Origin: Tubulanus polymorphus
Taxonomy: Eukaryota; Animalia; Nemertea
Length of the DNA: 64,000 bases
Assembly: GCF_964204645.1 (NCBI RefSeq)
Contig: NC_134033.1
Coordinates: 7,944,655 to 8,008,654 of the forward strand
Reading direction: 5' to 3'
The position numbers were made by a program, and so were the translations under genes. The notes under the pieces are model-generated. The model was not told where the DNA came from and did not search any database. It was given only the letters and a program-made list of their open reading frames with translations. Shown piece by piece: positions 13,132 to 52,812 of this stretch; position 1 is the first letter of the stretch; each line of letters starts with the position of its first letter.

Positions 13132-13135
13132 TTAA

Positions 13136-23106: not shown

Positions 23107-23519
23107 ATTGAAGTTATATACTAAATATACCAATTAGAATTTAAGATGTTGATAAAATAGTTTCTTATAGTTTGGAAATGTTTCAAATTTGAAATAAAAA
23201 ATTGACCTGTACACCGGAAAATAGGATAGATAGAAAAGGATTTTTTGAGAAAAATATTTACAGGTCTTAACTTATAGTCGTGATATTTGTTAAATGTTAT
23301 CGCTATTATAAAATTCATCTTCTTATGTGAAATTGGGGTTACCCAGACATTTGTTTTCCCCACTGGGCGAGTTGCAGGGTTTGTAGCGGGTCTTCCAAGT
23401 CGATATTTATTTGTATGAAAAGATACAAACTATGTATAGTATACTGTTACTAATTACAGAGAATATCATGCAGGCGTGAAGTGGCCTAGTTTACAAAGTA
23501 CAAATGGATTATAAACATA

Positions 23520-26265: not shown

Positions 26266-26267
26266 AA

Positions 26268-26405
26268 CTGGTCGCTCCCTCAGCATTCGTATTAAAGAGC
26301 TTAAGAAAGATATTATTAATCAATAACCCCAAAGTGCTGTGGCTACCCACGTTTGGGATACCAATGGTCATCAATTTGATTTTGATAATTCTCGTATAAT
26401 TTTTC
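26268..26405 (+). mobile_element. Second Penelope GIY-YIG fragment (opposite strand)
   Basis: TGRSLSIRIKELKKD...SAVATHVWDTNGHQFDFDNSRII with one stop. Confidence 0.6.
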
Positions 26406-27449: not shown

Positions 27450-27770
27450 TGGATTATGTACAATTTGCCTATTTATATTAATACCAACGAATATTTGTAA
27501 ACACAATCAATTGCAAAGTTGTAGCTTATGAAATCTTTTATGATGAAGTTGTATTTCAAGGTCATTGGTATATGGTCACCAGAGGGTGTGGAATAGCTGA
27601 ATAACTTAGTATTTTCACATAGTATTGGTTCCCAGGCATATTTTGTAACCACAATGAATTGCAAAATTATAGCTTGTGACATGTTTTATGATTGTGGTGT
27701 GTATCATAGTTACTGGATTTTTATATGGTCACAAGGGGGCGTTGAATAGCCAAATAACTTAGTATTGAGA
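27450..27770 (+). repeat. Orphan 153-bp HINE central repeat units
   Basis: Two degenerate TGGTCACCAGGGGGCG-type units at 27573 and 27726. Confidence 0.7.
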
Positions 27771-28814
27771 CATTATATTTCACTCTGTGTCCACGGTGCG
27801 CTGTTATCCTGATACAGGCTCGGTACAATTCTCCATGGATTTTTCTTGAACTTAGTGTGAGTCAGGTAAGATGTCCGCCCCCAGTGAAGATGGCCTCCAG
27901 GCCATCTTCAAAAATCTTGAATTTTTTGTTAGTGCAATACAGCAAAATACAATTTTTAAATGGAAAGCCCTTTAGCTTTCCAAGCGATGTCATCATCAAG
28001 AACATGGTATTGATTGTTCTGTCATGTGCTAGGGAGTCATAGGGAAAACCCATTACCATGTATATCATCAAAATTGAACATGCTAATCACACAGCGCACC
28101 ATCATTTCATCTGTAACAGCTGTCCTTTTCCCTTTATACGAATCATGAAATTGTAATAAATTCATTGTGAAAAGGAGACAAATAAAGAAATATCATTATT
28201 ATTTATACCTTATTGCAAATCTGAGAAAAAATCAATTTTTGTGCTCAAAAGTAAAATGTACTCAGTTGATCCTACTGGACCCATGGTCCTTTATCATCGA
28301 ATGCCATGTTTCTGATGAAATTAAACCCTTTCAATACAACATGGTGTCTCCGCTGCTGTACCGGATAGAATTTAGGGGTTTATAGGGGTATATTTGAGGA
28401 TGTTAGGGGTTTCATTAGGGTATGATTTCAGGCCTCAGAAAATTGTTACCTATGTATTTGACACTGACATATTATATACCATGGTGTTGAAAACCTTTGG
28501 GCTTACAACTAAGACAAATAATTTGGATATATGTGACCTTGAGGATGGACAGTTTCTGGTTATTCATTATTGTTCTTAGTGTCCGTTGCCATGACAACCG
28601 GATCAACGGGTATAAAAAATTGTCACAGATTTCATTTTCATCATCAAAATCATTGCCGGCACTAAACTATTTTCTGACTAAGTCTCATCATCTGAACTGC
28701 ACTGTCATATTCGTTGTCACTCTCAATTTGTTCACTACCAAATTCCAAGTCACCAGCATCGTATCTGTCAGCATCATAGACGAGCTGCTGAACTGTTTCA
28801 TCCAGCCAAATTGT

Positions 28815-29562
28815 TTTTTATCTCGGGCGAAGCCCGATATGTTGTAATGGGTCCAAAAATCGAATTTTTGCTTACAAATGAGGTTATAACTTTGACACGA
28901 TGTCATACAATCTACTATGTTTATGTGCAAAATGTAGCTTCATCATGCGGCTAAACTCTGTTGGAAATGGAATTTTGGATATCGCGTTCATTTAAGAGAA
29001 AGCGACGAATTTGTGGCGATTTTTAAAGAAATTTCAAGGAGCATTTTGTTTCATAAAAGGCTAGAAGGCTGATATACAACGTTACATTGAAGTAAAATAA
29101 CTGCTCCCTGCGGTTGGCTGAGCTCCCTCTGTCAATCAGTGTAAGGGCATATTCGATTGACGCAGACAAACCGGTCTATTAATCTTCTCATGTATTAATC
29201 TGTTCGGTTTAGTTTCTCATTTTCCAGTCATGGGAGCGTCTTATATGTTTCTTTTTAATTTGATAGCCATAGTATCGATTCCGTGTCCCCATATCTATTT
29301 CATTATGCAAATAAACGAAGATTCAATCGATACGCTACTTCACGGAAGATTATGCGTGCACAATCGAATAGGCCCAAACCTTGTGTATTGCCGCGATGAT
29401 TGCTGATTAGATTTCGATGATGTTGTTCACCGAAATCAGCAGATTTTACACATCCATGAAGTGTTCAATGAAAACCTCAAAGATGCATCAATCCGATGGC
29501 GCCTATACATTACAAAGATAACATTCTGCGCCCGAGATATTAAGATCCGTGGATCTCTTGTT
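28815..29562 (+). mobile_element. HINE-like element, family G
   Basis: subTIRs TATCTCGGGC / GCCCGAGATA, 5' stem-loop TCGGGCGAAGCCCGA, 3' hairpin AGATCCGTGGATCT then CTTGTT. Confidence 0.7.
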
Positions 29563-29840
29563 CCTGGCTGTTGCCATCTTGGATTTTATGCAGATGGCAG
29601 CACCGGCTGATACTGATAGATATGCCCTGCGATACCGTATCACATACGGTACGGGTATGCTAGCTTGCCAATTTGTACCGTATGCCATCCGATATTGGTA
29701 TTGTAAGGTTAAGCAAATTCGCCGTGTCAACATATTGGAACCTGTAAAAAAATGGCAATTGGTCACGAAAATCATTTGGAATTGCTTCCAACGCACCTGT
29801 TTTATAGTTAGAAGATAAACTACCAGTAATTATTTTGCAG

Positions 29841-29982
29841 TGATAACTTTGCGGCTGCTTGGATGAACCTCGGTATCGTACAATCAACGCTTAAGAAATA
29901 TGAACAATCAGAACGAAGCTATTTCAACGCCATAAAACATCGCAGAAACTATCCTGATTGTTACTTCAACCTGGGAAATCTT
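29841..29982 (+). CDS. TMTC4: TMTC4-like exon 9 in window (TPR)
   Basis: ttgcag|T...CTT|gtaag; DNFAAAWMNLGIVQSTLKKYEQSERSYFNAIKHRRNYPDCYFNLGNL, closely matching TMTC4 FAAAWMNLGIVQ...IKHRRKYPDCY. Confidence 0.95.
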
Positions 29983-30265
29983 GTAAGTGAAACTTGAAAC
30001 TCGGTTCCACAGTAAGTTGCGATAGTTCAGATCGATTGTCGATTTAATTGATTTTGGGCAAATTCCACAGTTGTGCACGTTAAATTTCACTCGCTTCAGT
30101 TCTAGTGCGGGTTAATTTGATACTTGATTCAGTCCCACAGTGGTGTGGGTGCTATTTGACTATGAAATCAGTTCAGCAGTTGTTAGTGGTTTTAATTTTA
30201 GTGTTGATCCAGTTTCACAATTGTGTGGTTTAAGTAATCATCTTTGCAGTTTTTTGCATTCACAG

Positions 30266-30380
30266 TATTTGGAAACAAAGCAACATACAAAGGCCTTATT
30301 TGCTTGGCGTAACTCAACCCGGTTGAAACCAACTCATGTCAGCGCCTGGAGCAATATGATCATTTTACTTGATAATATTG
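30266..30380 (+). CDS. TMTC4: TMTC4-like exon 10 in window (TPR)
   Basis: cacag|TAT...G|gtaag; YLETKQHTKALFAWRNSTRLKPTHVSAWSNMIILLDNI; ends phase 1. Confidence 0.94.
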
Positions 30381-30428
30381 GTAAGTATTTTCAATAATTT
30401 CTATTGAAAGATGGTAAATATACATTAA

Positions 30429-30686
30429 AGGGTAACTGACACTTTTTTAAAGATTTTCTACTTTTTACACTAAACGATATATTATAGTATACAATAAGGC
30501 TAGGTGATTTCATAATTGGAAAAATCTTTTCAATCTAGTCAGAATTGATGATTTTGATGTTCGCAAATTGCAAAATCACAAATTGCACGTAAACTAAACA
30601 TTTTGGAACAGAACGGTTGAAGATGAGTGTATAGATCAATAGAATACATCATATTTTGAAATTTAAAAAAAAGTGTCAGTTACCCT
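30429..30686. mobile_element. Kolobok-like MITE
   Basis: 20-bp TIR AGGGTAACTGACACTTTTTT; TTAA TSD. Confidence 0.85.
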
Positions 30687-30829
30687 TTAAGTAATGCTAT
30701 TTATATCTGGGTGTGTTGTTCTACCATCTGATGTATAAATGAATCATAGGGTGTTTCATTTTTTGCCCCTCTTCGTCAGCCACAAGGGGTATTGTCATCG
30801 TCTCTGACTTGTATCAACAGTATACCGAG

Positions 30830-33800
30830 TTTGGATCACTTACTATACAAATTGAGCAAATTCATATGACATGGTTTCCAGATGAAAGGCTTTTTTCACT
30901 GTGCAACTAAGCATATATTCATACAAATCATGCATTCAAGCGTCATCCATTCTCCAATTCCTAGGGAGCTAAATTTTGAAAAGTGCCTAGTTAAAAATTC
31001 ATAGGAGGTTTTTTGCAAAAATCTAAATGCAGAAATATCAGTTTTAAAAGACCAACCAGAAACCAAAGCCTCCTCTAAGATTGGCTTAGCCACAGAAATC
31101 TGCTGGTGTTCTGTGAAATCTCTAGTTGATTTGGTTTTTGATGGGTTTCGTCGTCAGCCGAACCCATCTATCCACCCGAATGCCATCTGTCTGTCTGTCC
31201 GTCTGTCTGTGGATGTTTCTTTATGACACGATTTAAGCTGTTTTTGTGGACCGATAATTCTGTAAATTGGCACATTTATTCTGTACTTGATGTAGATGGG
31301 GAAGCTTGGTTAATATTTGATTCTGATGTTTATAAGTGCCCAAATCTGGTTTTAAAATAATCAACGGTACTCGTTAGTTCAAGCTGCTGTAGTGCGTTAC
31401 TACGGCGACGCTCAATACACTCGCTGTGTGTATGTAACACAGAACATGTTTGTACATGGAGATATTGATCATACAGCACCTGGCGCTGATCTAGTATTAA
31501 CGCCTCGTGCGCGGTATTCAGCGCTAATACCGAGAGACTCGGGAATGTTTCGGACACAACTACGCAGTGAACTATAGAACTTTCGGAATTTGGATAAGGC
31601 CGGATCATTCTTTGCAGTTTCAGACGGTCGCTACTCTTTACCGCAAAAACCAGCGTAGATTAACTGGCCAGCTGAGATTTCCGCCCGATTATATCACTCG
31701 AATTTACTGAGTACGGGAGCTTCAATCACAGTCACAAAGAAATATTGATGATAAGTCCAAGTTTAATTATATATTCCACAAAACAAACGAGGCATTTGAT
31801 GAATAGAGTTTATTTTGTTTGAAAAAAAACATCATTTAAACACCGAAATATCAGCGCACCAGGTAGCGCGCATCCACTATTTTTCGCAGTGATAACATCA
31901 CACGCAGTATACGGCCAAGATCCGTGTTTGGAGCAACGCTGAGGACTAATCTTAAGTAATTGAAGATGGCAGTAAGTGTCATCAATTGAACTCGTCATTT
32001 TTATGCCCTCATGTTAGCAATCGTTGGAGCCAGGCTATCTTGTATTTAGTTTGCAACACTGATGATTTTGATATTGTTAATACTTAGTGCACGGTGCGAG
32101 TCGATTGCATTGTCAGCAATAAGGCGTTAACCGTTAACCATTTATGTATCAATTACCTGTAGTAATAGATAACGCTTCCAAAGGACCAGATTAGTGTTTT
32201 TACCGCGTGCACACAGACATGCATCAACAGACCCACATCTTAATTGTCGAATGAATGGTCATGCAAAGACATGGTGTCTTATTTAAAAACGATTTAAGCT
32301 TGGGCATTAATTGCTTTTCTATTAAAAGATATCCTATGAATGAAACTATTGTAAGCCACATTCAGTTGATGAACTTGATTTCAACAGTAACCGGCCGGCC
32401 TGGTTTTATATGTACTGTTCTAAAAAACTTATATAGCAGCTTCTGATTTTGTTTGTCCCGAGTAGTTAGTGCTAAAGTTTTAGTTGTTTTATGTCATTGT
32501 CAAGTCCAAAATGCCCATAATTAATCTTGCGTAACTGTCGTTCTACCGCTGGTGAATATTGTTTTCCGGTTCCACTTGGTCAATCGTAAGACTAGCTACA
32601 GGCCCTCAGCTAGCAGTTGGCCTTAAGGTACAGTCTCTGAACAGCTTCTAAACACTCGTGTTAAATCATGGATGTGAAGCTTCTCCCCCATGGACTGCAT
32701 GGTCATTGGCCTATGTCATGGGTTCTTGGCAATAGTGCCGAGAGCAGACTGTATCCAGTGGTCATGGTAAGTATACTTTCTGATGTTTTACCTTGATAGT
32801 ATGGATTACACATGCACCACATCAACACAGTTATTTCCATTAACTTTTCAAGTTCTAAGTCAATACTGAAACCCATCATGGAATGTTACTTTCTGGTTTG
32901 GAAGGAATCTTCATATGCACTAGCCTAAAGAAAATTCATCCTTCACAATTTGCGCCATGTTTGGGAAAAATAGCTTTGGATGGATTACCTTGATATGCTT
33001 TTGGCCATGTGCTCGAACTGCAAATTCAATCACATTTTATTCTGCAAAAAAATATCAAATCCAATTCAATTGCCGCTCACGGACAATTAAAACAGGAAAA
33101 AGGACGAGTTAAACGACAATGACTAAATTTCTGTTGACTACGAGAAGACTGTTTTTAATGGCTGACTGGAAAACAAGTACATATACTATATAACGAGTAC
33201 AAAATACGCATGCGTAGAGCTGAAGCCTGTCGGGAAAACTAATAAAACGAAAACTGACACCCGAAATATCTGAAATATTCCCGACACACTCCAGTCCCAC
33301 GATGTTACAACACAACAACGGTTTTTATGACAGTTCTTTTGAATTCGACTGAATCTTAATTAGTTCATTAGCCTTGATGGTTGCAGCACGCTGAAGTCTG
33401 AGTGGAACGTCACTCAGTTGTTTGGTGTCGTTGATTAACGAGTTAATGTCCTGACACGCAATTTCTAACGGAACCAGTTTCGAAATTGGTATAGCCTTGG
33501 TTGGTTCTTATACACGTACGATTCCGTTTGTTCCAGGATGTAAGCGCGCTAAAACGGCTAGTTTCCACGATAACAATGGGTGTTGTCTGCGTGTACGAGC
33601 ACTACATCGTCAACCTAACCTTACATAACAACTCTGAGAAAGAGGCATTCCCGGCCTGACCATGCCTCTCACGAAGAGCAGGAAGATATTCCTCGAAAAA
33701 ACGACGCTTAAAGTGATTGAACAAATAGGCTCTTTTTTTCGCCCTGTTGACGTCTGATCGTTGAATGTAGTCGGGATTGTGTAAGTCGTCGATATCAACT

Positions 33801-34841
33801 AATTTGTATGGTACGCCGTTAATTTGACGACCTATAATAATTGCGATGGCGTTAACGGTTGCGGATCTGACATTCCATTGCATAAGGCGGTAATCGGACG
33901 GTCGTTCAATGGGGACTCTATTTCGGTGACTACGGTTTGTAATTCGGTAAACTCTAGTTTTGCTCGCCTTAACATTTTCTTCAATGCACGTTTCACTAAA
34001 CCAACCAATCGTTCAAAGAATCCACCGAACCATGGGCCTCGACAAGGCCCGCATTTCCATTCGCATCCTTTCAACGCAAGTTGTTTCTCCAAGTGAAGAG
34101 AGGAGAATAACTTAATTAACTGTTTCTCTGCTGCTTTAAACGTTGCAGCAATATCGGATATGCAACAGGTAGGAACAGAACGATGGCTGCAAAATCTACG
34201 GAACGCTAGCATGAAAGTCGGTAATGATAAATCTACGACAAGTTCTAAGTGAATACACCGGGTTACCGCACAAGTGAATAACAAAATATACGACTTTGAC
34301 ACAGTAGACAGATTTAAAGTTAGACAGAAATTCGAATGGCCCAGCGTAATCGAGACCGGTTATCGCAAACAGCACTGCATCTTCACTCTCTCTGGTGGTA
34401 GAGGAGGAGATATTGGATACGCATACGGTTTACCCTGGCGTTCTCTACAAGTCTTACAACTGGATAATAGTTTAGCAGTAAGCCTACGCAATCGAGGAAC
34501 CCAGTAACATTGACGAACATTAGTTATCGTAGCTGAAACTCCCTCGTGATGTATATTCCTGATTTAAATTCAAAAGTTCTCCAGAACATGCGGAAATTAG
34601 ATTTTCAACTTCGGTAATCGTTTTTGTAACTATGGCTCATTGTCCACTCTGCTTATTACGTGACATAATATTAGTTAACTTAAACGACGGCTCGGTCTGT
34701 GCTACTTATGAAAAATTGATTGTACTGAGTAAATTATAGGTATTGAGTGGGGTATTTTGACAAATATTACCCATGGAATGGATCATTTGCCATCTATGAA
34801 AAGCTGACAGGCTGGCCATAATGCCCCTTGGGGCTCTTGTT
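30830..34841 (+). mobile_element. Family B HINE with nested family D HINE (31135-32899) and BEL fragment
   Basis: Segments collinear with 46182-47219; ends GGCTGGCC...GCCCCTTGGGGCTCTTGTT. Confidence 0.65.
33071..34570 (-). mobile_element. BEL/Pao LTR retrotransposon 3' fragment (integrase, possible PPT and LTR at 33071-33286)
   Basis: HHEGVSATITNVRQCYWVPR..CKTC zinc-binding motif; YILLFTCAVTRCIHLELV, FMLAFRRF, PWFGGFFERLVGLVK; frameshifted. Confidence 0.88.
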
Positions 34842-35033
34842 GTATTATGTAGGTCTTCCAACATGGCCACCAATCCCATATATGTATGTGAAATGTATTT
34901 TGGACCTTGTTCCCGCTCTACAGTCTACAGATTTTGACTGATTTTCTTATAACTTAGTGGGTTTCGGATAATATAGGAGAAAGATATGGCTTGTTGTTTC
35001 TTATGTAAGTTACTTTGCGTATTTATTTTTTAG

Positions 35034-35213
35034 AACAGTATACCGAGGCAGAACGGATTGCGCATAAAGCACTGGAGTATGTACCGAAAGAATCTCAGAT
35101 TTACTATAACATCGCTAATGTCCTCGGGAAACAGTCAAAATACGTCGAAAGTGAAAAATTCTTCAATATCGCCATCAAAATCAATCCGAAGCCTGTCTAT
35201 TTCCTAAATCTTG
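35034..35213 (+). CDS. TMTC4: TMTC4-like exon 11 in window (TPR)
   Basis: tttttag|AA...G|gtaag; EQYTEAERIAHKALEYVPKESQIYYNIANVLGKQSKYVESEKFF...FLNL; phase 1 to 1. Confidence 0.93.
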
Positions 35214-35400
35214 GTAAGTTATCAAACATTTTTGACCCCTTCCGCATGTCTGTTAACTGAATTGCATTAATCCTTTCATAATGAGTATTATCTGTGAACC
35301 TATGTAATACTGATGACTCACTCCCAGTAGCCCATCAGTGAACCCATTTTAAGAAAATTAGAAAATATACTAGCTATTGAGATCATCCATTTAAGTGTAC

Positions 35401-35660
35401 TTTTTTGCCCACTTGGGACTTTAGTCCAAGCGGGCTATTGTGTTCCCTTTTTGTCCGTCGTCCGTCATAGCATTAGTCTGTCCGTAGACGGAATCCAGTT
35501 ATTTTGGGAAGTTTTGAAGACGCTGCAATGTAATGTCTTGATATTTGCTTTATACATGTATCTAATCTAGACACATCTTCAGCCCAAAAACTGGCCGGGT
35601 CAAATTCAAGATGGCCGACTGGCAGCCATTTTTGTTCGCCAAAATCAGCACTTTTTAGGA
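35401..35660 (+). mobile_element. Family A HINE, 5' fragment
   Basis: GCCCACTTGGGACTTTAGTCC start and CCGT repeats. Confidence 0.8.
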
Positions 35661-37699
35661 CAACAGTACGTAGTACACGTTGTCCTATTGTTATCGTGGA
35701 ATCCGTCACGTCAAATGCTTTTCGTCTGAAACTTTCACAGTCGCTTGAATATGAAACACAGAAGGTTGAGTTCGTATATGATGAATTTTCGTTACTTGGT
35801 TAATTGAATATTGCCTAAATGAAAAATTGAGTCTCTAAAGTAGCGCCACCCCTGTCCAGAAGTAAAACTCTATCAGTATGAGCTTAAAATAGTGCCACGC
35901 ATACATTTTTTGAATAGCACATTACATAGGCCTATTTTCTGATTTAGTTGTTGATTTCCGTGTATAGAAATCGGGAAATTTATTTTGTCGTTTATTGCCA
36001 GAAAGTTCGGTATTTTCTTGGTGTGTGTGTCAGCGGATTAATTGAATGTTTACACATGGGTAATATGGACTCAGCGAGTACACGTGCTACGTCGATTCAA
36101 CATTAGCTGCTGTGTTGAATCGATACTCAGCGTTCACATGCGGTGTAAAAGTCTAGTACATGCACAGTATAGTTTTTACAGATCGCAGTACGTCGAGCAA
36201 CGCTGAAAACTTTCTTACTATTACTATTACTAAGTAAAATGATTAATCTTCAATAATTCTTTTGGACTTTTGCGTCAGCGATCTATTTTTAGAGCCCGAT
36301 TATGTGTATTTAGTCTGCGGCACAGTGATGAGAGCGCGCGTCGATAACATTATTGAAACTTAACTTTTGAAGACTATTGATGAAGCCTAAATTGGGTAAA
36401 TTGTCAATGTTATGTCATTTTTGGGGATTTTTAGCGATGTAGTATGACGTCATCTTGATCTACTAACGTAAACACATGAGCATAATTGTACATCATTTGC
36501 TGTCGAATCTACAAGTAGGCTTTTTATATATCAGTGATACAACATATAAAATTCTTCAATGAGAAAACCACAAAAGAAGAAATAAAATTGACAAGGTTTT
36601 TTGGTTTACCTATGTTATGGCTGTTGGTTGGCAGTCTGCCAAAAGTATGTTAAATCGCGGCACAAAATTTAGTGGTAATACTTACAGGGTTGTCTTTTAT
36701 CGTGAATCAAGTAGAATTGTACGCGGACGTCAGGCCGGAAAGCTTCGAACAGATGATGCAATATTTTTCGTGAAAAACGCGAAAAACATCGAAAATTTTT
36801 CGCTTTCTATAAGTTACTTGTGTTGACCTATATTTGAGTTTCCGGCGTGAATACGGGAAATTCTCGGAATTTCTGCGAATTTCGGCACCTCTGACGTAAT
36901 TTTGGGAGTCACAAAATGGCGAACAATTCATTTTATATTTGTGCCGAGCTTAGTTCGCTGTTAGTTTGTTCAGTTGTGAGGATTATTATAGAGTCGGCTA
37001 TCTAATTTAGTATCTCAAACTTAGTAAGTGTGGCAATTTCTATAGTCCTAGCCCGGCTTTGTCTTGTCATTGTCTTATTTTGACCGACTCGTACAAAATA
37101 CATTCTTTGTTTGAAAGAGTAATAGACGATGGCGCCAGTCCGTGAGCCGTTGTTTTTGGAGAGAGGCAGTCGACAAATGTTTGGCATCGTTTTTATTGAA
37201 ATGAGAGTTAATTGGTTCCACACAGTTGTGTGCGCTTTTTCATTTGCTATTGCCGTAGGCTAATTAGTGTGTTTGCCGATGTTTTTGCGGTATATTGGCA
37301 TTCTTCGCGTAACCAGGGCTGCCAACCTTGTCCTTACGCAGATAGGGACAGAAGGATATCTTAGGAGGAACTTTGGGGGTTCAAATAGGAACCTACTAAA
37401 ATGAAGCAATTTCTCAGTTTTGCTTAATAGGAACAAAATAACTATAAATAGGAACGATTTAATCTAATCAATTTTTATTGAACAAAAACACCTACGTTTC
37501 AAAATTTCTTTTTTGAAACTTAATCATGCAAAATATCAACGAAGTGTATCATACATAAGATCACCATAATATTCTCAATTTATCAAAACTATCTAACTAC
37601 AATGAGAACCAACTTAAGCAAAATAAACTTGATATTTCTCGAATATGTAGCTTTAAGAAAACAATAGAGGAAATGGAATAATAATAATCAGATCATGCT

Positions 37700-38832
37700 T
37701 ACCTTTGTCTTTGGGCCAGCGAAGGAATTTTTTCGCTGCGGCCTGCTTTGGAATTTTTGGCAAAGAACCAACGACCAGGTTCGGTTGGGCGTCAATGGCG
37801 AATTGAAGCCCTAAAACATCGAGTAAAACCGGGCATCCCGGACAGGACTTTATGTCCTGTGCGGGCGTTTTGTTTCTTTTAGATCGCTCTGCTTCACGGA
37901 GGGGTTCACGGGAGCGGTTATTTATTCCGCTGCTGGATCACCTAAAGGGTGATATTTCACGGGACACAGTGGCCCGATGGGTCTCTTCACTGATCAAGGA
38001 CATTTTATTGAAGGAGAATCTTTCCTCGGAGGGAGTGGTTTCTCATCAAGTGAGGTCTATGGCTACTTCCTGCGCAGCCTTTTTCGGGTGCTCCGTTGGA
38101 GGAAGTCTGTCGGGCTGCCTTTTGGAATTCTCCATCGACATTCACGTCATTTTATTTACGGGATGTTTCAGGCCAGTTAGGCTCATTAGCTTCACTTGGT
38201 CCTGTTGTCATGGCTCAAGGTGTCCGTTCTTTCCGATCGGACCCTTTAGTGTAGAATATTTATGTTGCATTATCAGGATCACAGGGGGTGTATCCTTGTA
38301 CATAGTTTGGGCTCATATCTGCAAGTATTAATTTCGCAAAATTCCGGAGGGGCCCCTGAGCTGGACGGACTCACTGTGGCCAACCGGTCTTCCCTGTGCT
38401 ACAGTGCTCCATTCCGTGCTTGGGTAAGTGCTCTCTTTTTCCCTCTTACCTTGCGTTTGAGCGGTGGTTTTTCTATCTACCTTTCCCACCATCCTTGTGC
38501 TAGGCTAGTCTAGCAAAAACCATAGGAAAGGGTACAGTACTCGACGGAAATATTACAATTTTTGGAACTAAAATTTGTATTTCCGAGTAGTACTTACCCT
38601 TTCCTATGGTGGGAATCCCGCCCACCTGCCCCACATAGCTGTTTTTTTTTTGGTCTGCTATGACGTAAAAAGATGGCGGATTTCGCCGGTGGCTAAATGC
38701 AATACCGCAGGGCCTGGTCGTATAGATAAACCATTTGGGATCAATCCAAATTTAGAAAATATTGGCAAAAACCATAGGAAAGGGTAAGTACTACTCGGAA
38801 ATACAAATTTTAGTTCCAAAAATTGTAATTTT
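37700..38832 (+). mobile_element. DIRS retrotransposon 3' end: tyrosine recombinase C-terminus plus ICR and right ITR
   Basis: LCPVRA, RLFI, SHQVRSMATS, frameshifted AAFWNSPSTFTSFYLRD; perfect 59-bp inverted repeat 38552-38610 / 38771-38829. Confidence 0.88.
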
Positions 38833-38869
38833 TCAAGCACGTTATTGTTTTAGACACAGCATCCTCAGC

Positions 38870-39240
38870 GAGAGCGCCAACTATGTGTGAAGTTTTAGTA
38901 CGCCCCCAATGATAGTTCATTGAATTGTAATGACTGGGAAACATTTTTTTCAATAGTTCTCTCGCGTGATTTCAACTAGGAAAAATGTAAACAAGGTTTC
39001 AGCCCTAATTACCTCCAGTTCCTTAGAGTCCGGACGAAAAAATGAAGATATTTTCCCTATCTTCGATATGCTTTTGTGTTTTCCAGAATCGCAATGTTTT
39101 TTTACATCGTTAAGGCCGCCGTAAGAGATGCTGAAATCAGTGCCACAAGACAAACAGAACGCAAAGTAAACTCCCCGTTTACTTTTGGCTACGCAAGGAA
39201 ATGTCAACTTATAGTCTTTCGGAATTTTTGCATTCGCTTC
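38870..39240 (-). mobile_element. hAT-like transposase N-terminal zinc-finger fragment
   Basis: AFCLSCGTDFSISYGGLNDVKKHCDSGKHK...ISSFF..VIRAE; CAGGGCTGCCAACC terminus-like motif at ~37314. Confidence 0.65.
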
Positions 39241-39244
39241 GTTT

Positions 39245-40511
39245 TTTAGCCCACTTGGGACTTTAGTCCCAGCGGGCTATTGCGTTCACTTTTCGTCCGT
39301 CGTCCGTACGGTAGCGTTCGTCCGTCCGTAGACGGAATCCAGTTATTTTGGGAAGTTTTGAAGACGCTTCAAGGTAACGTCTTGATATTTGGGTTACACG
39401 TGTATCTACCCTAGACACATCTTCAGCCCAAAAACTGGCCCTGTCAGAATCAAGATGGCTGACTGGCAGCCATTGTTGTTCGCCAAAATCAGCACTTTTT
39501 ACACATTTTTGAACTTTTTGAGGGAAATTTTGAAGACGCTTCGATCAATTACCTTGATCTTTCGGATATATATGAATCCCCCCAGGGCCCATCAACGAAA
39601 CAAAAATTGGACTCAAGATGGCCGTCCGATGACCTTTTTAGTGCCTAAAAATGTTAATTTTTGCCCGAATTCTGAGTCATGTAGCTTCCTACTGGTTTAC
39701 CATTTCTCATTGCAATTTGTGATGGGTATTCTTTGGAAAGGGATGTTTTATACCTCAGACAGGTATTTTTCATCAGCCAATTATGACGCAATTGGCGGCC
39801 ATCTTGGTGTCATCAGTACTCATTCGTAAGTGGGAAAAAGTTTTTCCACATTATATTGATACCTAAGCGTATTTTGCTACCACAATCAATTAGAAAGTTG
39901 TAGCTCATAACGTGTTCTATGATTGTGGTGAGTTTCAAGGTAATTGGATTTCGTATGGCCACCAGGGGGCGTTGAATAATACAATATCTTAGCATTTCTT
40001 TATTATATTCGTACCTATGCATATTTTGTAACCACAATCAATTGGAAAGTTGTAGCTCATGACATCATCTATGATTGTTGTGAGTTTTAAGGACATTAGT
40101 TTTTCTATATGGTCACCAGGGGGCGTTGAATAGTAGAATAACTTAGTATTTACTTATTATATTGGTACCTAGGCATATTTTGTTACCATGATCAATTGCA
40201 AAGTTGTAGTTCATGACATGTTCTATGATTGTGGTGAGTTTCGAGGTCATTGGGTTTTGAATATGGTCACCAGGGGGCGTTGAATAGTAGAATGACTTAG
40301 TATTTCCATATTAAATTGGTAACGAGGCATATTTTGTTATCACAATCAATTACAAAATCGTAGCTGCTGACATGTTCTATGATTTTGGTGAGTTTCAAGG
40401 TCGTTGGTTTTTGTAAATGGTCACCAGGGGGCGTTGAATATTGAAATTGTTAGATTGTTGAGCATTTGAAACCATTTCCCAAGTGGGCATGGTGTCCCTG
40501 GACCCCTAGTT
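39245..40511 (+). mobile_element. Family A HINE, full length, four 154-bp central repeats
   Basis: 12-bp subTIRs GCCCACTTGGGA / TCCCAAGTGGGC; units at 39956, 40110, 40264, 40418. Confidence 0.85.
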
Positions 40512-42420
40512 TTGTCATTGGGCCAGATTCATCGGCGGATCCCGAATCGCTGTGTGACGACGGCCCAGCGTCTGCCATCTTGTTGATGGTTGAGCTAATT
40601 ACCGACCGAAACCAATATTTCCTAATTCAATTCAAATCAAAAGTGAATACGGCTGATGCTGAACGAAGGTCAATTCAATTCACATCTTTACTGAGTCACG
40701 CTTTTTCCGTAACAATTTTTTCCATCAAATTTATTTGATTTAATTTATTTCATAGACATTATGAGGAAATGAAGATGTTTTATAATAAAAATCGTATTCT
40801 TGAAATTATTTTCGGGACATCGGGACACGTTTTTTTAACCCTGTCGGAACGGCGTATTGTCGGAACGTGACCAATTCATTTATACGGAATAAGCACTTAT
40901 ACGGTTTAACCGGAGACGGATTAACCGAGGTTGACTGTAGTTGAATTCGAACGCCGCATTAGTTGTCGTTTCCTCGCTACGATCCTGCCTCTGTGTGTCT
41001 TGATGACCTCTGCATCTTTTATGCGCTACTGCTTGGCGCTAAGGTTTTTGATGAGGCGGGTACGTAGCAGGGAGGCCGCATTATGCTCGCAGGGAATAAA
41101 CATCGCTCACACGTACATATTGTTCATGTCGAACTGATCCACTGTAGTTTGAAAATAGATAGAGAATTCATTAGAATGTCTAACTTGTTACTAACCCGCC
41201 CACATAGAAAGAGTCTTTTTAGTATCATTGATCATGGTTTAAAAAAGTAATGTACAGGGTAGATAGGTGGCTGGCTGTGTCAACTGTGTAAGCTCAGCAA
41301 TGAGTGAAGAGACGAGGTATCAATTTTTTAGCCTCAGGTCTTGACTTTAAATCCTGAAAATCCTGACAGTTTGTATGGAACTTAGAATACTTTCTCATCT
41401 CCCGATACAGCTAGATTTGATTTCAGCTTCAGCAACAAAAATATAAATATGACATCTGAGATCTTTTTGATTTAATGAAACCTTATAATTTATTAGGAGG
41501 CTTATAATCTATAATGATTACATATATTTCATTTCAAAATCTATTAGGCCTACTTAAAATGTGTTACGTATTTACCTTCTCTTCCTCGTATAAACAACTG
41601 TTTGTCATTTAAAATCTAATTACCTTATACTTTTATAACATGTATTTCCTTTTATGTTAAGTATAAGCTGAAAGAGCACCTTACTAAACCAATGTATGGT
41701 CTAGTATGGTGGATATGATTAACTCCTTCAATTCACTAACTTCTGCGCTGTATCTAACAGTGCCCATGGGCACCTCGTTGAAGTTTTCGAGGGATATTTT
41801 GAAGACGCTTTAATCAATTACCTTGATTGTACGCATATATTTGTATCCCCCAAGGACCCATCAGCATGAGAAAAATTGGAGAGCTTGGACTCAAGATGGC
41901 CATCCTGTGACCTTTTTTGTGCCCAAAAATGTCAATTTTGGTCTGAGCTCTTAGTCATGTAGCTTCCTAATGGTTTGATATTTTTCATTGGAATTTGGGT
42001 ATTCTATGAAAAGCGATCTTTAATACCTTAGACAGGTATTTTCGATCAGCCAATTATAACGCAATTTTGCAGCCATCTTAGTTTCATCAGAATTCATTCA
42101 TAGGTGGAAAAAGGATTTTTGAGGAAAATAACACAGGTTTTGAATTAATAGCCTTCATGTTCGATCATTTATAGCACAGTAATATGATAATCTCTTCATA
42201 TGGAATTTGGGATCACCCAATTCTTTGTTCTTGCCACTAAGGAGTTAGATATTGAATAATATATAATTTGTCTACTTATAATGGTACCTATGCATATTTT
42301 GTAACTACAATCAATTGCAATGTTATAGCTCATGGCATTTTCTATGATTTTGGTGAGTTTCAATGTCATTGGTTTTTGTATATGGTCACCAGGGGCGATG
42401 AATTGTACATTAAATTAGTT

Positions 42421-42975
42421 TTTAGGCCAGCCGTAGGATGGGCCTATTACTATGCAAATGGAGCGATTTTGAATGACATGGTTTCCAGAGTAAATGCTCT
42501 TTGACTGTGCAACTGAGCATATATTCATACAAATCATTCATTAGAGCATTATCCATATTCCTAACGCGTTGAAGCTGAATTTTGAAAAAAGTTTGTTGAA
42601 ATTTATATGAGACTTTTTGTGAAAATCTGAATGTAAAATATCTGTTTTAGAAAGCCAATCAGAAAGCAGGTGTTCACGTGAACGTACAGTATCATCTACT
42701 GACTACCGGGTTTCATTTTAAGATCCAAAATTGCATTTCAAGATCGATTCCTGTAAAATCTTTAATTGATTTGGTTTTGAATCCAATTCAATTTTACTTT
42801 ATTGAACAAATAAAAGATCAAATCCAATTCCATTTTGTTTTATTGAGCAAATTTCACGAAATTCAATTTGATTCCGCTTTCGAATCAATAAGACCAAGAG
42901 AAAAGATTTATCTGAGGTATTTGTTCTTGCCAGCTCCAGTCACTGTCACGATTGTATTGTGTAAATTATAGGATG
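42421..42975 (+). mobile_element. Family B HINE, 3'-truncated (preceded by family A-like remnant 41780-42420)
   Basis: AGGCCAGCCGTAGG..GCCTATTACTAT start shared with 46182 and 48271. Confidence 0.7.
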
Positions 42976-43026
42976 TTGCGTGCAAGTCCTCTTATAAATG
43001 TGATAGTGACGGTGTACGTAAACACA

Positions 43027-46000
43027 TTTTTACCTGTCATGAAGGTTATAAGATGGTAGTGAGTCGATGACGTCATTTTCATGCCACCACTTATAATTTG
43101 TTGGTGGGAGTTCAGATAAAGATTTGTCAAATGAATAGATACTTTAATCTTATTAATGCAGAGTGCGAAATTTCACTTTTTAATAAATATTTCCCTAGTA
43201 AGACTGTGGGAAAGTTTCTATCTTTGAATGGGCGAATCACGGCGGCAGAGTGCACCTGTGTCTAGGCGGAAATAGTTCCATATGAGGGCAAAGCTTTTAA
43301 ATGATTAGACAGTCGGAGGTAGTTTATCAACTTTTTTCAACTATAGTGCTACTATTTTTCCAATCAAATTGCTAGATTTCGATCGTTTCTCATGAGTCAG
43401 CACTTGCAGTTCAAGTGTGATTTTGATGTGCGTAGTGTTACATTATGACTAGCGTAATGAATGGCGGCGCCATGTTTAAGCTGCGCGTGGAATTATAGGG
43501 TGGAATTATCTTGATTGTATCCATACGAAGTTTATTAAAGGTTAGTGTCAACAAATGGTCCATTATAGTCCCTCTAATTTATGTGGAGAGACGGGAAAAC
43601 TGTGGTCTGTTTCATGTTATATTTGGCCTACATGACTGACCTTACTTGAGCGTTCGCTGCCGGCGCGCCGCTTCAAAGTTATTAATGTAGTATTATATAA
43701 ATGATTGTTAATGACATACAACAAATAAACCTTTAAAGAAAGGTACCTAGTGTCTGATATTCTACTGAAAAATTCCGGATTGATTCACCGCATAGTTTTT
43801 TCATAGTGAGCATTTTAGTATATGAATCAGTTAAGATGATTGACAGGAGCGGGTGCCGTTGTATCAGCTGTTGAAGACGTTCGATGTCAACAATAATATA
43901 AACCAAGTGCGCGATGCAAACAGGGACATCAAACTAAGAAGCACTGAATTTCTGAATTACATGTGATTTGAATAGGCCATATGTGCTGGTTTTTCAAAAA
44001 GTCAAATCTTAATTGACTCCTATTGCATCGGCCTAGGCTAGGCCCTCTGGAATCAAATTGAATTCGACACAGTAATTCGCCTGTAATTTACGATGAATCA
44101 TTTCGAAAATTAGCTTGAAGATTGGGTCTGACAAGATGTCCACCCCGATTGTAAAAAAGGTAATTGGTGATCAAATATGGCTGCCATTGGGGTGGCCATC
44201 TTGAATTTCTTGTTTGCACGATGCAGCCCGCAATTCTTGATGGATTTTCGCAAAATTTGGTGTGAGGGTACAGACTGCTTACCCCCACGGAATTTCCGTA
44301 TTTGCTACGGATTTTAGTAGCTAAATACGGAAGCATAGATGCTCCGTAAAAACTACGGTTTTTCATCTGTTCTTTTCAAAATACCGATTTGTTTTATCTT
44401 CCTGTATGAAAATATGGCTAAAGTATATCATCACATCTGTGAATACAGTTATGAACTTTCAAAAGCAGGAGTACGGGGGTTCGTTTACTTCTACTCCTCG
44501 TAATTCTGGTCAGAGTATTGTTTTTATGCCAGGGGCGTACACGTGCGTCTATCTATTCTTTCACTGTATTGCTGCTGTGTATGATCAATATAATATATAT
44601 ATGATTATTTTATCGTGTCCTGAAAAATACTAAGTAGTAAATAAGTATGAATAAAGGTCGAGGTAGATATTTCTTCAGCTGGTAAAACCTGGGATTAAAG
44701 GCTCATTGACTTAACAGTGGTTTTTACTATATTTCGTGTGGCCAGGCTTTTTTATTTTGAGGTACGTATAATGTCAGAAGGCAAAATAGAAATGAAAATG
44801 AAATTGTTTTTTGTATTTTCTTCTTAAACGATTATTTTCCTGACTTCATTAATAGATATTTTCATCCTTGGGGAAAGCCCACTACTCAACTTTTCATCAC
44901 AGTGGCAGCACCTGCCTGATACGCCTGATAAGTAGATACACTCCCGGGAACGATCGATTGATGCTTAATTGGAAACTATTGACAGACAAAGATTCATTAG
45001 ACTACTGATTCGAGCTTATTTTTACTGAAATAAGTATGCAATACTACTGATGTTGAAATTTGGGGATAAGCAGGTCTGAGGGTAGGTAAGCTGTCCATGC
45101 CTATTGTATATGGAGGTCATCGGCTTTCAAATATGGCTGCCAGGGTAGCCATCTTGAATTTCTAGCACGAAACAGCCTGCAATTCTTGATGCATTTTCAT
45201 GATACTAGGTGTAATAATTTTGGTAGTTGAAATGTCTACCCCTTATTGAAAATAAAGGTCAGGTATGGCCACCTTGGTTGCCATCCATCTTGGATTTCTT
45301 TTCAGCACGATGCCTACAATTCTTAATGCATTTTTTCATCCAGTGTGATCTTTGGGGCAGCGAAAATGGGCTTGTCTTTACATGCAAGGATATATTAACA
45401 GAAAATGAACATTATTGCCTCATAGCCTATACCATCATAAATATTTAAGTTCATCCTCAAACTAGAAGATCTTGGAATTAGAAATATTAAAGATTGGTCA
45501 CATGTTTAATAGTAACAGAATTCGACATTTTTTCCTTCATAATACCAGTAATCACCAGCATAATACTCGGCAACAAAATTATGTTTTGAGCAGCATACCA
45601 AAAGTATCTACAACAAATGTTTTCCGCGCCTTGTTCCGTATCGATGGCAAAATGCCCCAAAATCACTAAGAGATTCTCCTACATTGAAATCTCTACGTTC
45701 AAACTTCAAACTTTTTTCGTTAAGCAAATATTGACCTCATAGTCTGGCTTCCTTTCGTAATTCTTTAAGGGACCTTCATTTAGTATGTACGCATTGTTTC
45801 ATGGATTTTGGTCCCTCCTCTTTGCACAAGGTCAGCCATTTTTTCCTGTGTCTTGGAGAGCTCGCTTCCTTGGCCCCTCCCCTACATGCGTACATACGAA
45901 ATGAACGACCCCATATAATGCTATTTGATGTATTCTGTTAATTTGATTCATATATTAGGGGATTATATTTTTCCCCCTTCCCGCCATTTGTAATTTTGTA

Positions 46001-47321
46001 AATTTGAATGTGTGCATGATTGATGAGTATGTGTTTTGACCGCTTGTGAGGGATAGGTGTCTCATACCCGACAAGCAACCTTGCTTTAATTGAGCACCTA
46101 CCACTGATATCGGAACATCCTTTATAAATATAAAATTTGTTACAATTTCTTGTGGAAATAAACTATTATCATAAACTGTTATTAGGCCAGCAGTTGGCTG
46201 AGCCTATTACTATACAAATGGAGCGAATTTAAATGACATGGTTTCCAGAGCAAAGGCTCTTTTACTGTGCAACTGAGCATATATTCATATAAATCATTCA
46301 TTAAAGCATTATCCATTCTCCAAACTCAACGTAGCTGAATTTTGAAAGAGGGCCTAGTTAAAATTTATATGAGCTTTTTCGCGAATATCTGATCGCAAAA
46401 ATATTTGTTTTGAAAAGCCAATCAAAGGCAAGGAATCTTCTATGATTGGCTTAGCCGCAGAAATCAGCAGATGTTCACGTGAACCCGCGGTATCATCTAC
46501 CACTTTACTTCCGGGTTTTATTTTAAGATCTAAAATTGTATTTCAAGATCGATTTCTGTGAAAGGGTTTGTTGATTTGGTTTTTGGGAGGAATATTTTTA
46601 TTAGCACTATAGAAAATATCATTGACCATTGTGCAAAGTCCGGGAAAAATAGCTATTTCTTAAATCGGATAGATGACCTTGATATGCTAGTTAGCCATGT
46701 GCTCAAACTGCAAATTCAATCAAATTTGATTCCGCAAAAATTATCAAATCCAATTCAATTTTACTTTATTGAACAAACAAAAACATCCAATCCAATTCAA
46801 TTTTGTTTTATTGAGCAAATTTCAGAAAATTCTATTCTATTCCCCATTAAAATCAATAAGACCAAGGGAAAAGATTTATCTGAGGTATTTGTTCCTGCCA
46901 GATCCAGTCGCCGTCTGTGCTACTTTTGTATTCTACAATTGTATTGTGTAAATTATTAGGTATTGACTAAGTTAGTTACCTAATCGTTGGTGGTAAGCTT
47001 TTTATTATCGGATGGGCTTATACCAAATGGCCTTCCCATTCCTGACTGTGGTTTGTGAAAATATCCGATCGTGAAACTCAACCACAGACAGGTTACTGAC
47101 TAGTATTGACTCTGAGCTGGGAGTGTACTTTGACAAATTTAACCCACAGAATGCATCATCATTTGCCATTTTATGAAAAGCTGACAGGCTGGCCATGGTG
47201 CCCCTTGGGGCTCTTGTTTATAACTATTTTAAAACTGTTACATCGTTACAATGTAAATCATTCTGTAAAACTTTGAATACTTGGATCATTCTTCTTCTAC
47301 TGCGTCATGAAGGTATAAGGC
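43027..47321 (+). mobile_element. Family C HINE with nested insertions
   Basis: Collinear with 8812-9120 and 10276-11680. Confidence 0.75.
46182..47219 (+). mobile_element. Family B HINE
   Basis: subTIRs GGCCAGC / GCTGGCC; 3' hairpin GCCCCTTGGGGC then TCTTGTT. Confidence 0.8.
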
Positions 47322-47607
47322 TATAACAGTATTAATTGATTGTCTGCTATTTTGCTATGTTCTGCTATATCAAACTTCACCATTTAGATGGCACAATGAC
47401 TGTCTAGTCATCTCAATAATCCTAGAAATCAAATAATAGCTCTGCTCTTGCCAGGTTACCGAGGTCGAGAGGATGCGTCCCAATTCTCTTCACACCTCTC
47501 CGGACTCTCCCTCGAATAGATCTATTCTTGGACAATGAAACTAGGAAATCGGTTTTGATTTTACAAAATATGAAATCCAATTAAATTTCATTCGATAAAT
47601 ATTTCAG

Positions 47608-47753
47608 GTGTTTTGTATCATCGTTGGGGGCAGTTGATTAAAGCAGAGAAGACGTACTTGAAAGCGCTGGAACTCGACGCTGGACTGAATCACGCTCACG
47701 AGTATTTAGTCATGGTCCGAAAAAAGATCGCTACCTCAAGGCAAAATACATGA
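47608..47753 (+). CDS. TMTC4: TMTC4-like terminal coding exon
   Basis: tttcag|GT; GVLYHRWGQLIKAEKTYLKALELDAG...RQNT* (TMTC VLYHRWG motif); stop TGA followed by TAA TGA. Confidence 0.93.
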
Positions 47754-47918: not shown

Positions 47919-49498
47919 CAGTGGAACCTCGTTCTAACGACCTTGGAACTAACGGACCATCGCTTGTGATGTACGAAAAGAAAAACCTGGGCCAAAAATC
48001 CTCCTCATTTACAGTTAAATTTCATCGGAAACAACGACCCATTTTCTAACGAATTTTCGGTTATAACGACCTTAGTTTTTGAGTCATATTACATCTTTTT
48101 CATCGGGTCTATCGATCGCCAGCCACGATCAATAGCACTTGTTTATTTATTGTCAGGTTTAAACCGAGAGACGGTGTTGCTTTATTTACCTTAGATTAGT
48201 TATTCAGATTAACGATATACAAGGTGTTGCTGGCTGCTACAAGTATTGTTTCAGCTGTTTAAAGTTTTTTTTTTAGGCCAGCCGTAGGCTGAGCCTATTA
48301 CTATACAAATGGAGCGAATTTAAATGACATGGTTTCCACACAAAAGGCTCTTTTGCTTGCCAAGTGAGGGCATATTCGAACAAATCACGTATTTAAGCGT
48401 AATCCATTCTCGGAATCGTAGCGAGCAGAATTTTGAAATAGGGTCTCATGAAAATGTTTTCTGCATTTTTCACGAAAGTTGAATCGGGAAAATTTCAATT
48501 TTTATCAGCCAATCAGGAAGTTGTGTCTTCCCTGTGATTGGTTTATCTGAAAATATCAGCAGCTGTTCACGTGAATTATCGCGATTTCATTACTGGCGCT
48601 TTTGCGCATGACTTCATGTGTCAACACGCGACAATACTTCCGCGTTCGCTACGTGTTCGCTGATTGGCCCATTTACTGGGAAATTCCACAGAAGCCTAAT
48701 GTGGTTTGTTACAAGCGCTGTGATTGGCCCGACCCGATTCTGGCATGGCTATTATGACGCACTTGGCGGGCTCCACCTACGATGAGTACTGAGTACTGAT
48801 GACCCCAACTTGGGGTCATCAGTACTCATTCGTAGGTGGAAAAAAAGTTTTTCCACATCATAATTGATACTTAAGCATATTTTGCTACTATAATCAATTG
48901 GAAAGTTGTAGCTCATGACATGTTCTATGATCGAGGTGAGTTTCAAGCTCATTGGTTTTTGTTTATGGCCACCAGGGGGCGTTGAACAATACAATAACTT
49001 ACTATTTCTATATTACATTCGTACCTATGCATATTTTGCTACCACAATCAATTGGAAAGTTGTAGCTCATGACATGGTCTATGATCTTGGTGAGTTTCAA
49101 GCTCATTGGTTTTTGTATATGGCCACCAGGGGCGTTGAACAATACAATAACTTAGTATTTCTATATTACATTCATTCCTGCTGTCTGTGTTAACACACGA
49201 TTTTACTATGTAAATGATATTGAGCAGGGAGTGTATATTGATAAATATAACCCACAGATTACATCATTTATAAAAAGCAAATCTGACAGGCTGGCCATTG
49301 TGCCCCTTGGGGCTCTTGTTTAATCTTAAAATAGGGATTGACCCTGTTATTTATTTGATTGGTTGATTTCGTTTGATTTTTTTGATTGAGTGTGCCTAAA
49401 AGACCCACCCAATAAATGATGTTAAAGGATCTAACGAACTATCGGATATTACAAACTTTTTATTTTGCCCAGCGGTTCGTTAGAAGGAGGTTCCACCG
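47919..49498. mobile_element. pogo/Tigger-like MITE 165 bp after the TMTC4 stop
   Basis: TIR CAGTGGAACCTCGTTCTAACGA (20/22); TA TSD. Confidence 0.85.
48271..49321 (+). mobile_element. Chimeric HINE: family B ends, family A-type central repeats
   Basis: B-type termini; 48815-49170 matches 39808-40150; units at 48966 and 49120. Confidence 0.8.
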
Positions 49499-51590: not shown

Positions 51591-52812
51591 TTTTTAGCCC
51601 ACTTGGGACTTTAGTCCCAGCGGGCTATTGTGTTCAGTTTTCGTTCGTTCGTCCGTCCGTCCGTCAGTAGACAGAATCCAGTTATTTTGGGATGTTTTGA
51701 AGATGCTTCAAGGTAATGTCTTGATATTTGGTTTATGCATGTATCTACCCTAGACACATATTCATCCCAAAAACTGGCCCTGTCAGAATCAATATGGCCG
51801 ACTGGCAGCCATTGTTGTTCGCCAAAATCAGCACTTTTTACACGTTTTTGAACTTTTTAAGGGAAATTTTGAAGACACCTTGTTCAATTACCTTGATCTT
51901 TCGTATATATCAGCATAACAAAAATTGGGTCGATTGGACTCAAGATGGTCGTCCTATGACCTTTTAAATGCCCAAAAATGTCAATTTTGGCCCGAATTCT
52001 GAGTCCTGTAGCTTCCTACTGGTTTGCCATTTCTCATTGCAATTGCTGATGGGTATTCTTTGGAAAGAGATTTTTTATACCCGAGACAGGTATTTTTGTT
52101 CAGCCAATTATGGCGCAATTGGCAGCCATCTTGGTGTCATCAGTACTCATTCGTAGGTGGAAAAAATATTTTCGACATTATATTGATAGCTAAGCATATT
52201 TTGTTACAACAACAAATTAGAAAGTTGTAGCTTATAACGTGTTCTATGATTGTGGTGAGTTTCAAGTTCATAGGTTTTTACATATGGCCAGCATGGGGCG
52301 TTGAATAACACAATATCTTTGTATTTCTATATTATATTTGTACCAACACATATTTTGTTACCACAATCGATCGCAAAGTTGTAGCTCATAACATCGTCTA
52401 TGATTGTGGTGAGTTTTAAGGAAATTAGCTATTCTATATGATCACCAGGGGGCGTTGAATAGTAGAATAACCTAGTATTTCCTTATTTTATTGGTACCTA
52501 GGCATAAGTTGTAGTTCATGACATGTTCTATGATTGTGGTGAGTTGCAAGGTTATTGGGTTTTGAATATGGTCACCAGGGGGCGTTGAATAGTAGAATAA
52601 CTTAGTATTTCCATATCAAATTGGTAACGAGGCATATATTTCACAATCAATTACAAAATCGTAGCTGCTGACTTGTTCTATGATTGTGGTGAGTTTCAAG
52701 GTCATTGGTTTTTTATATGGTCACCAGGGGGCGTTGAATATTGAAATTGTTAGATTGTTGAGCATTTGAAACTACTTCCCAAGTGGGCATGGTGTCCCTG
52801 GACCCCTAGTTT
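51591..52812 (+). mobile_element. Family A HINE, full length
   Basis: Collinear with 39245-40511; units at 52285, 52439, 52569, 52718. Confidence 0.85.

Follow-up and report, generated by a model that had tools for sequence, protein, structure and literature searches.

The CTCF-type motif arrays carried by HINE-A elements are probably transposon cargo, in that the motifs may well be bindable but would have been spread by amplification of their carrier, would not be kept as insulators as a class and would take their orientation from the element family. An earlier note on the window (the whole 64-kb stretch of DNA analysed here) had proposed that a rolling-circle element family disperses co-oriented insulator cassettes. 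That proposal fares badly on several counts: the motif decays at least as fast as a matched control, the copy at 39245-40509 is polymorphic, and co-orientation goes with the strand of the host gene, dwindling at distances above about 100 kb.

According to the reading favoured here, HINE-A inserts into T-runs without target duplication and has been active recently. Each 154-bp unit presents a strong match to the CTCF core, to which CTCF can probably bind. Amplification of the element, not selection by the host, would have placed the about 9,000 units, and after insertion the motifs would decay like neutral GC-rich DNA, faster at CpG. Single copies may have been co-opted.

Structure of HINE-A and its empty site

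The copy at 39245..40509 (plus strand) is a full-length HINE-A of 1,265 bp with a present/absent polymorphism, delimited by empty-allele contigs and by alignment of its termini with two other copies. In contigs of the public runs X1 and X2, position 39244 is joined to 40510, with exactly 1,265 bp skipped, three ambiguous Ts and zero target duplication. X1 is probably from the source animal, and the four runs on record are contigs of one study. The exact junction fixes the boundaries of HINE-A and indicates insertion into a T-run without target duplication, and the finding of the empty allele in two runs means that this copy is not fixed.

The element begins with a T-run followed by AGCCCACTTGGGAC..., and its first 35 bases are palindromic. 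The terminal palindrome (39247-39282) encloses the 5' subterminal inverted repeat GCCCACTTGGGA at 39249..39260 (plus strand; by alignment). Folded as DNA, 39244-39290 reaches -9.9 kcal/mol (z -3.6), a value that 0 of 200 shuffles equalled. A (GTCC)n-like microsatellite run follows at 39294-39330. The central array, at 39839..40440 on the plus strand, contains 3.9 units of 154 bp, U1-U4 (Tandem Repeats Finder score 812; unit alignment); across copies, such arrays hold 2.4-6 units. The 3' subterminal inverted repeat TCCCAAGTGGGC lies at 40477..40488 (plus strand) and leads through ATGGTGTCCCTGGACCCCTAG to the ...CTAG end and a run of Ts; in most of 102 sampled HINE-A copies, ...CTAGTT is followed by a further T. 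The two 12-bp subterminal repeats are mutually inverted and are conserved in three copies of the window as well as in those on C6.

HINEs are defined by subterminal inverted repeats, a nested 5' repeat, a microsatellite, central repeats, boundary Ts and TT insertion (PMC4067079). The anatomy of the HINE-A copies fits this HINE/DINE-1-like definition (PMC4067079), which bears out their description in the earlier note as Helentron-type elements. The one weak feature is the 3' stem-loop: 3' of TCCCAAGTGGGC there is a GTCC/GGAC stem of 4 bp (7 bp with one mismatch), and the fold of 40470-40515 (z 0.22) is no better than shuffles. HINE-A derives from a rolling-circle transposon of the Helentron type, is itself non-coding and has been recently active.

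Other copies in the window, all on the plus strand, differ in completeness and age. An older full-length HINE-A at 51591..52814 is about 87% identical to that at 39245-40509 and carries motifs at 52285, 52439, 52569 and 52718, while a HINE-A with an internal deletion (1534..2283) carries them at 1876, 2029 and 2182. An old fragment of the central array (27463..27780; 72-78% identity) retains decayed motifs at 27573 and 27726. A fragment of the 5' arm, found by sequence comparison, lies at 35398..35657, and a diverged A-like arm with about 1.2 units lies at 41778..42424, adjoined by a family-B 5' end and with a motif at 42383 that is short of one G.

Family B is a second type of HINE. It is told apart by a 5' end that reads TAGGCCAGCC..., by a subterminal repeat of its own and by a GCCCC/GGGGC stem at the 3' end. 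One copy without central repeats, identified by sequence comparison, occupies 46186..47220 (plus strand). Another, at 48276..49322 (plus strand), contains A-type central units (48805-49179), in which motifs lie at 48966 and 49120. Two HINE families thus have the repeat module in common. Two array fragments break 38 and 45 bp past a motif, one of the breaks being the junction with a family-B tail, and LINE insertions next to the motif were not seen anywhere in the window.

Genome-wide abundance and a candidate autonomous relative

A 20-mer derived from the unit has 8,913 matches in the genome at up to 3 mismatches, compared with 25 for its reversed control. The genome holds about 9,000 units, of which roughly 4,000 have an intact 16-mer, and many are 99% identical to the copy in the window.

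The Pfam domain Helitron_like_N is found at 58 places in the genome. Among ten Rep loci compared, only one, on C6, shares sequence with HINE-A; the other nine Helitron-like loci were rejected as partners, with no terminus in common. The C6 element is 82% identical to HINE-A over the 5' 250 bp and has an identical subterminal repeat. Its reading frames encode a herpes-tegument-type protease domain, DUF6570, Rep and a PIF1 helicase. The Rep motif is FYRVEFQHRGSPHIH (FYR...QHRGSPHIH), and the GSPH-type Rep signature is diagnostic of Helentrons (PMC4067079). A frame-shifted tail gives an endonuclease match that is below threshold (E 0.004). At this locus (C6, 13.62 Mb; L036 4362-6905, minus strand) the protease, of the herpesvirus-tegument (C76-like) type, and DUF6570 lie upstream of Rep.

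One TGA and one frameshift interrupt the C6 copy, whose 3' end was not found at the locus. An identity of 82% is, on this alignment, lower than for a current partner. Downstream of the C6 element, in the same orientation, are two HINE-A copies, one of them without central repeats. The relative and this short derivative both lack the repeats, the ends of the derivative being intact, which indicates that the array is not needed for transposition.

CTCF-type motifs and the host CTCF

All 16 motif copies reported earlier are real. A search with TGGYCACCAGGGGGCG allowing up to 2 mismatches returns 14 sites in the 64-kb window, all on the plus strand (1876, 2029, 2182, 27573, 27726, 39956, 40110, 40264, 40418, 48966, 52285, 52439, 52569 and 52718), and 0 in 100 shuffles; the remaining two, at 42383 and 49120, have a G-run that is one G short. 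The reported strand and the spacing of ~154 bp likewise stand, with every copy on the plus strand and spacings of 153-154 bp except for 130 and 149 bp within 52285-52718. Tandem Repeats Finder places arrays of period 153/154 at 1836-2196, 39839-40440 and 52170-52636. The statement that each central unit of family A and of chimeric family-B elements contains the motif agrees with what is seen in the HINE-A and family-B units.

The motif class was judged against the vertebrate-type CTCF core consensus CCASYAGRKGGCR. U1 (TGGCCACCAGGGGGCG, 39956..39971, plus strand) matches at 13/13 core positions. U2 (40110..40125), U3 (40264..40279; pattern search and unit comparison) and the truncated last unit U4 (40418..40433), all on the plus strand, match at 12/13 with a T at position 1; besides this first core position, they are off consensus at the base that follows the core (TCACC...GCGT). 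The U4 position was the one used in the genome-wide decay test described below. The core motif of CTCF is read by its fingers 3-7.

YY1-like words, AAGATGGC/GCCATCTT, had also been noted in the same elements; 5 are within HINE-A copies, among 19 in the 64-kb window, where about 2 are expected. Several copies outside HINE-A, where the word occurs e.g. at 11159, 44195 and 45148, share a recurring GGGGTGGCCATCTTGAAT context, which indicates that another repeat family carries the word.

Binding presupposes a CTCF orthologue, and one with 11 fingers is encoded on C3. The search pattern CxxCxARFTQS, modelled on human CTCF and later compared with solved structures, has one exact match, on C3; a back-translated YKLKRHMRTH pattern was discarded, having matched an unrelated zinc-finger gene on C8. 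The locus (L002) has three exons, at 507-836 (fingers 1-4), 1402-1827 (fingers 5-9) and 2034-2231 (fingers 10-11). Compared exon by exon, the first two exons are collinear with human CTCF (PDB 7w1m_H) residues 267-375 (E 3e-68) and 376-519 (E 2e-61). In fingers 4-7 the recognition helices hardly differ from those of the human protein.

The canonical word CCASYAGRKGGCRS occurs 1,245 times in the genome and its reversal 16 times, a ~78-fold difference. HINE-A units read GCGT and so cannot be matched by this word. The matches are dispersed and varied in sequence, with clustering near the end of C1. Judged from these counts, the CTCF-type word is strongly favoured in this genome. Given that the host has CTCF and uses the word genome-wide, the HINE units can probably bind CTCF.

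Two further observations concern the distribution of such words. At 31.21-31.74 Mb of C1, by the chromosome end, canonical CTCF-type words form dense clusters, several of them within a few hundred bases. A MITE-like element at 13300-14110 of the window holds CCACCAGGTGG(C/T) in both of its inverted arms, beside 18-bp repeats of the ACTTACGTCGTCACAAA type, and is a second, unrelated repeat with a CTCF-like word.

The resemblance to a CTCF site could also be fortuitous, the G-rich block being a satellite-like trait of the unit or the site of another protein. The motif carries no signal of constraint, U2-U4 are off consensus at the two positions named above, and among the very many repeat families that were scanned some would match by chance. 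Against this, U1 is a complete match to the core, the enriched word recurs in other repeats such as the arms of the MITE at 13300-14110, and the recognition helices of the host protein are close to human ones. Taken together, a fortuitous resemblance seems very unlikely.

Decay of the motif and conservation between units

The earlier note had named decay of the motif at the rate of the flanking repeat sequence as an outcome that would refute its proposal. Decay of the motif after insertion was followed in the last unit, where the motif was caught by an A, 16 free positions and an AT-rich flank of 18 nt. The control was the left-arm sequence GGCCGACTGGCAGCCA, which like the motif has 12/16 GC and one CpG, caught by 19 flanking bases. 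The anchors for motif and control are thus different 19-nt sequences of similar composition, with 823 and 649 genome matches respectively. The 16-mer is intact in 377/823 (45.8%) of the motifs and in 344/649 (53.0%) of the controls (z 2.7, against motif conservation), as an average over all copies that may include a selected minority. Derived per-site decay is about 0.049 for the motif and about 0.040 for the control, which overlaps the YY1-like word and whose own constraint might hide weak constraint on the motif. A hand tally of the first 100 rows gives 73 changes in 1,504 sites for the motif and 53 in 1,552 for the control, some of these changes being shared subfamily variants.

Far from being conserved, the motif decays slightly faster than its composition-matched control, which is the outcome that the earlier note had set against its own proposal. 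In the 100-row samples, changes affect 13.8% of CpG positions in the motif and 6.2% in the control, and 3.6% and 3.0%, respectively, of non-CpG positions. The fast loss of CpG in the motif suggests germline methylation of the units. Neutral-like decay after insertion points to the arrays being transposon cargo.

Between unit types, the consensus units U1-U3 differ at 26/154 columns (17%). The motif window has 1 variable column, a value equalled by 23% of all 16-column windows, and shows no special conservation by this measure. The longest invariant block (20 bp) does not contain the motif; the motif core with TTGAATA forms the second longest (19 bp). Conservation between units is not significant, and was dropped as a sign that the motif has some special part to play. 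The best-conserved stretch of 20 bp in the unit, TCTATGATTGTGGTGAGTTT, has on the sense strand the word GGTGAGT, which resembles a 5' splice donor (39836-39842 of the window). Donor-like words occur at positions 582, 684, 836, 990 and 1144 of the HINE-A element, and with one such word per unit, a sense copy in an intron would bring 4-5 U1-type sites into the pre-mRNA.

Neutral decay after insertion is also what would be predicted if the array served the transposon itself, with bound CTCF keeping the element in open or unmethylated chromatin, or shielding it from neighbouring silencing, and with selection acting on the active master copies. Lineages that bear the array would then out-replicate those that do not. 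In keeping with this, none of the four unit types has lost the motif, although 17% of columns otherwise vary among them, and the same repeat module is found in family B, whose ends are different. The shared module and the 19-bp invariant block around the motif core could both stem from an advantage to the element. Read contigs cover the junction of a variant without the array (39755 to 40445) to a depth of about 2,200, compared with 150,000-650,000 for the array sequence. The motif window is, however, conserved no better than 23% of unit windows, with the longest invariant block lying elsewhere, and both the autonomous relative and the short derivative with intact ends do without the repeats. 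Fast CpG loss in the motif suggests methylated germline copies, not protected bound sites, and HINE central repeats without CTCF motifs are common in other animals (PMC4067079, PMC7492417). A benefit of the array to the transposon is consequently regarded as unlikely, and the reading of the arrays as passively amplified cargo is preferred.

Orientation of the elements and the TMTC gene

The earlier note saw the dispersed arrays as co-oriented insulator cassettes. The co-orientation itself exceeds chance, but it is local and is a property of the element family, not of the motif. For 133 merged HINE elements on C1 (2.8-20.2 Mb), 41 orientation runs were found where 67 were expected (z -4.6). The same-strand share falls from 0.83 for distances of 5-20 kb to 0.70 for 20-50 kb, 0.64 for 50-100 kb and 0.50 above 100 kb. 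When the set is thinned so that each 20 kb keeps a single element, the runs test on C1 loses significance (z -1.5). In an independent sample, five elements all lie inside runs of their own sign. Strand totals of the ~8,900 unit matches are balanced. Co-orientation on a megabase scale was considered from 42 plus and 3 minus copies over 7 Mb of C1 among the matches listed, and was discarded since other listings show many minus copies. Tight clusters of HINEs on the same strand, 1-5 kb apart, also occur.

The window contains a TMTC-type O-mannosyltransferase gene at 448..47750 on the plus strand, with exons for residues 198-786 of protein P0001. The exons run from 448-540 to the last at 47574-47750; Pfam TMTC_DUF1736 falls on 3972-4412, and tblastn of P0001 gives 81-100% identity exon by exon. 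All of the Helentron-type pieces inside the gene (8/8) are sense to it, whether they belong to family A or family B and across identities of 74-99%. Most copies of the window are intronic and sense to TMTC, and family-B copies without the motif are co-oriented in the same way. Downstream of TMTC, the minus strand carries a piggyBac-type transposase fragment (DDE_Tnp_1_7) and frames for a LINE-type reverse transcriptase and endonuclease, at 54421-55494, 55843-56676 and 61463-63939.

Since the copies differ in age and family, neither duplication nor a single local burst can explain their co-orientation. The arrays are co-oriented because Helentron-type elements lie one way over gene-sized distances, here along the sense strand of TMTC. 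The pattern can be accounted for by a preference for one strand with respect to some stable feature of the locality. Candidate causes are strand-specific integration relative to transcription or replication, and selection. Transcription is the simplest candidate for the feature, with replication direction as an alternative; drawn from one gene, this is a lead only. Poly(A) signals were dismissed as a cause of the sense bias, AATAAA/ATTAAA occurring 1 time on each strand.

It is conceivable that the integration or survival of Helentron-type elements depends on their strand relative to transcription, and that successive insertions in this way lay co-oriented, truly CTCF-bound arrays along genes. 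As a whole, this combination is considered quite unlikely.

The original proposal, that the host uses the dispersed, co-oriented and roughly nucleosome-spaced arrays as insulator or loop-anchor cassettes, draws on the strong motif match in a genome that encodes CTCF, on the over-representation of the CTCF-type word and on the co-orientation of arrays across tens of kilobases. TE-borne CTCF sites are known to shape loops in mammals (PMC7156512, PMC9902604). The evidence from this genome nevertheless points the other way. The motif decays slightly faster than its matched control, the copy at 39245-40509 has an empty allele, and the copies of the window are mostly intronic and sense to one gene, a trait shared by motif-less family-B copies. 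Loop anchoring by CTCF is reportedly limited in invertebrates (10.64898/2026.10.19.760054). Such use of the arrays by the host is held to be improbable, and co-orientation is better attributed to the element family, as under the cargo reading.

Relation to known systems and significance

The HINEs and DINE-1-like elements of Drosophila, mites, mosquitoes and oysters (PMC4067079; PMC7492417) share with HINE-A the subterminal repeats, nested palindrome, microsatellite and T-run boundaries. Further points in common are satellite-like central repeats of ~150-170 bp, TT-type insertion without duplication and a Rep/helicase relative sharing an end (PMC4067079; PMC7492417). For HINE-A, identity to its relative reaches just 82% over the arm that they share. 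That HINE central repeats seed satellites is known in oysters (PMC7492417). HINE-A is unlike the described HINEs in having a CTCF consensus in each central unit, which is unreported for the others. In the literature searched, no work linking Helentrons with CTCF sites was found, the two being mentioned together only in passing.

Waves of CTCF sites spread by mammalian retrotransposons, SINE B2 among them (PMC7156512, PMC9902604), likewise involve a lineage-specific, high-copy carrier whose consensus contains a strong motif. In both cases the motif matches of the genome were multiplied several-fold (PMC7156512, PMC9902604). HINE-A differs in that the carrier is a rolling-circle DNA element in an invertebrate. 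Each copy holds 3-6 tandem, phased sites, in contrast to one in the mammalian carriers, and the sites are on average without a sign of retention by selection. Helitron minisatellites of C. elegans, proposed as insulators (10.64898/2026.08.08.743475), resemble the HINE-A arrays as intron-enriched tandem repeats borne by rolling-circle elements for which a boundary role has been proposed. The C. elegans model rests on DNA mechanics and a 10-bp periodicity in an animal without CTCF (10.64898/2026.08.08.743475), whereas HINE-A has a 154-bp unit and a candidate protein-binding motif. The HINE-A arrays are a real and clearly delimited feature that brings together HINE central repeats and CTCF motifs borne by TEs, each of which was known before, and they are most likely selfish cargo.

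For spiralians there is next to no direct evidence of CTCF-based boundaries (PMC10658181). In the matter of how CTCF site landscapes arise outside vertebrates, the HINE-A genome is a natural experiment: its young arrays, each of 3-6 phased CTCF-type motifs, number in the thousands, and many are likely to be polymorphic like the copy at 39245-40509. A single animal could supply both the filled and the empty allele for comparisons of binding, methylation and insulation. The strand bias of Helentrons at the scale of genes offers a lead on how eukaryotic rolling-circle elements choose their targets or survive in them. Should the elements indeed lay strand-specific, CTCF-bound arrays along genes, these would be an invertebrate DNA-transposon counterpart of the SINE-driven CTCF waves of mammals, and the present and absent alleles would measure the effect of a new CTCF array on chromatin folding. 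Even under the cargo reading, the HINE-A family more than triples the strong motif matches in the genome, which would make it the main raw material from which new boundaries may be recruited.
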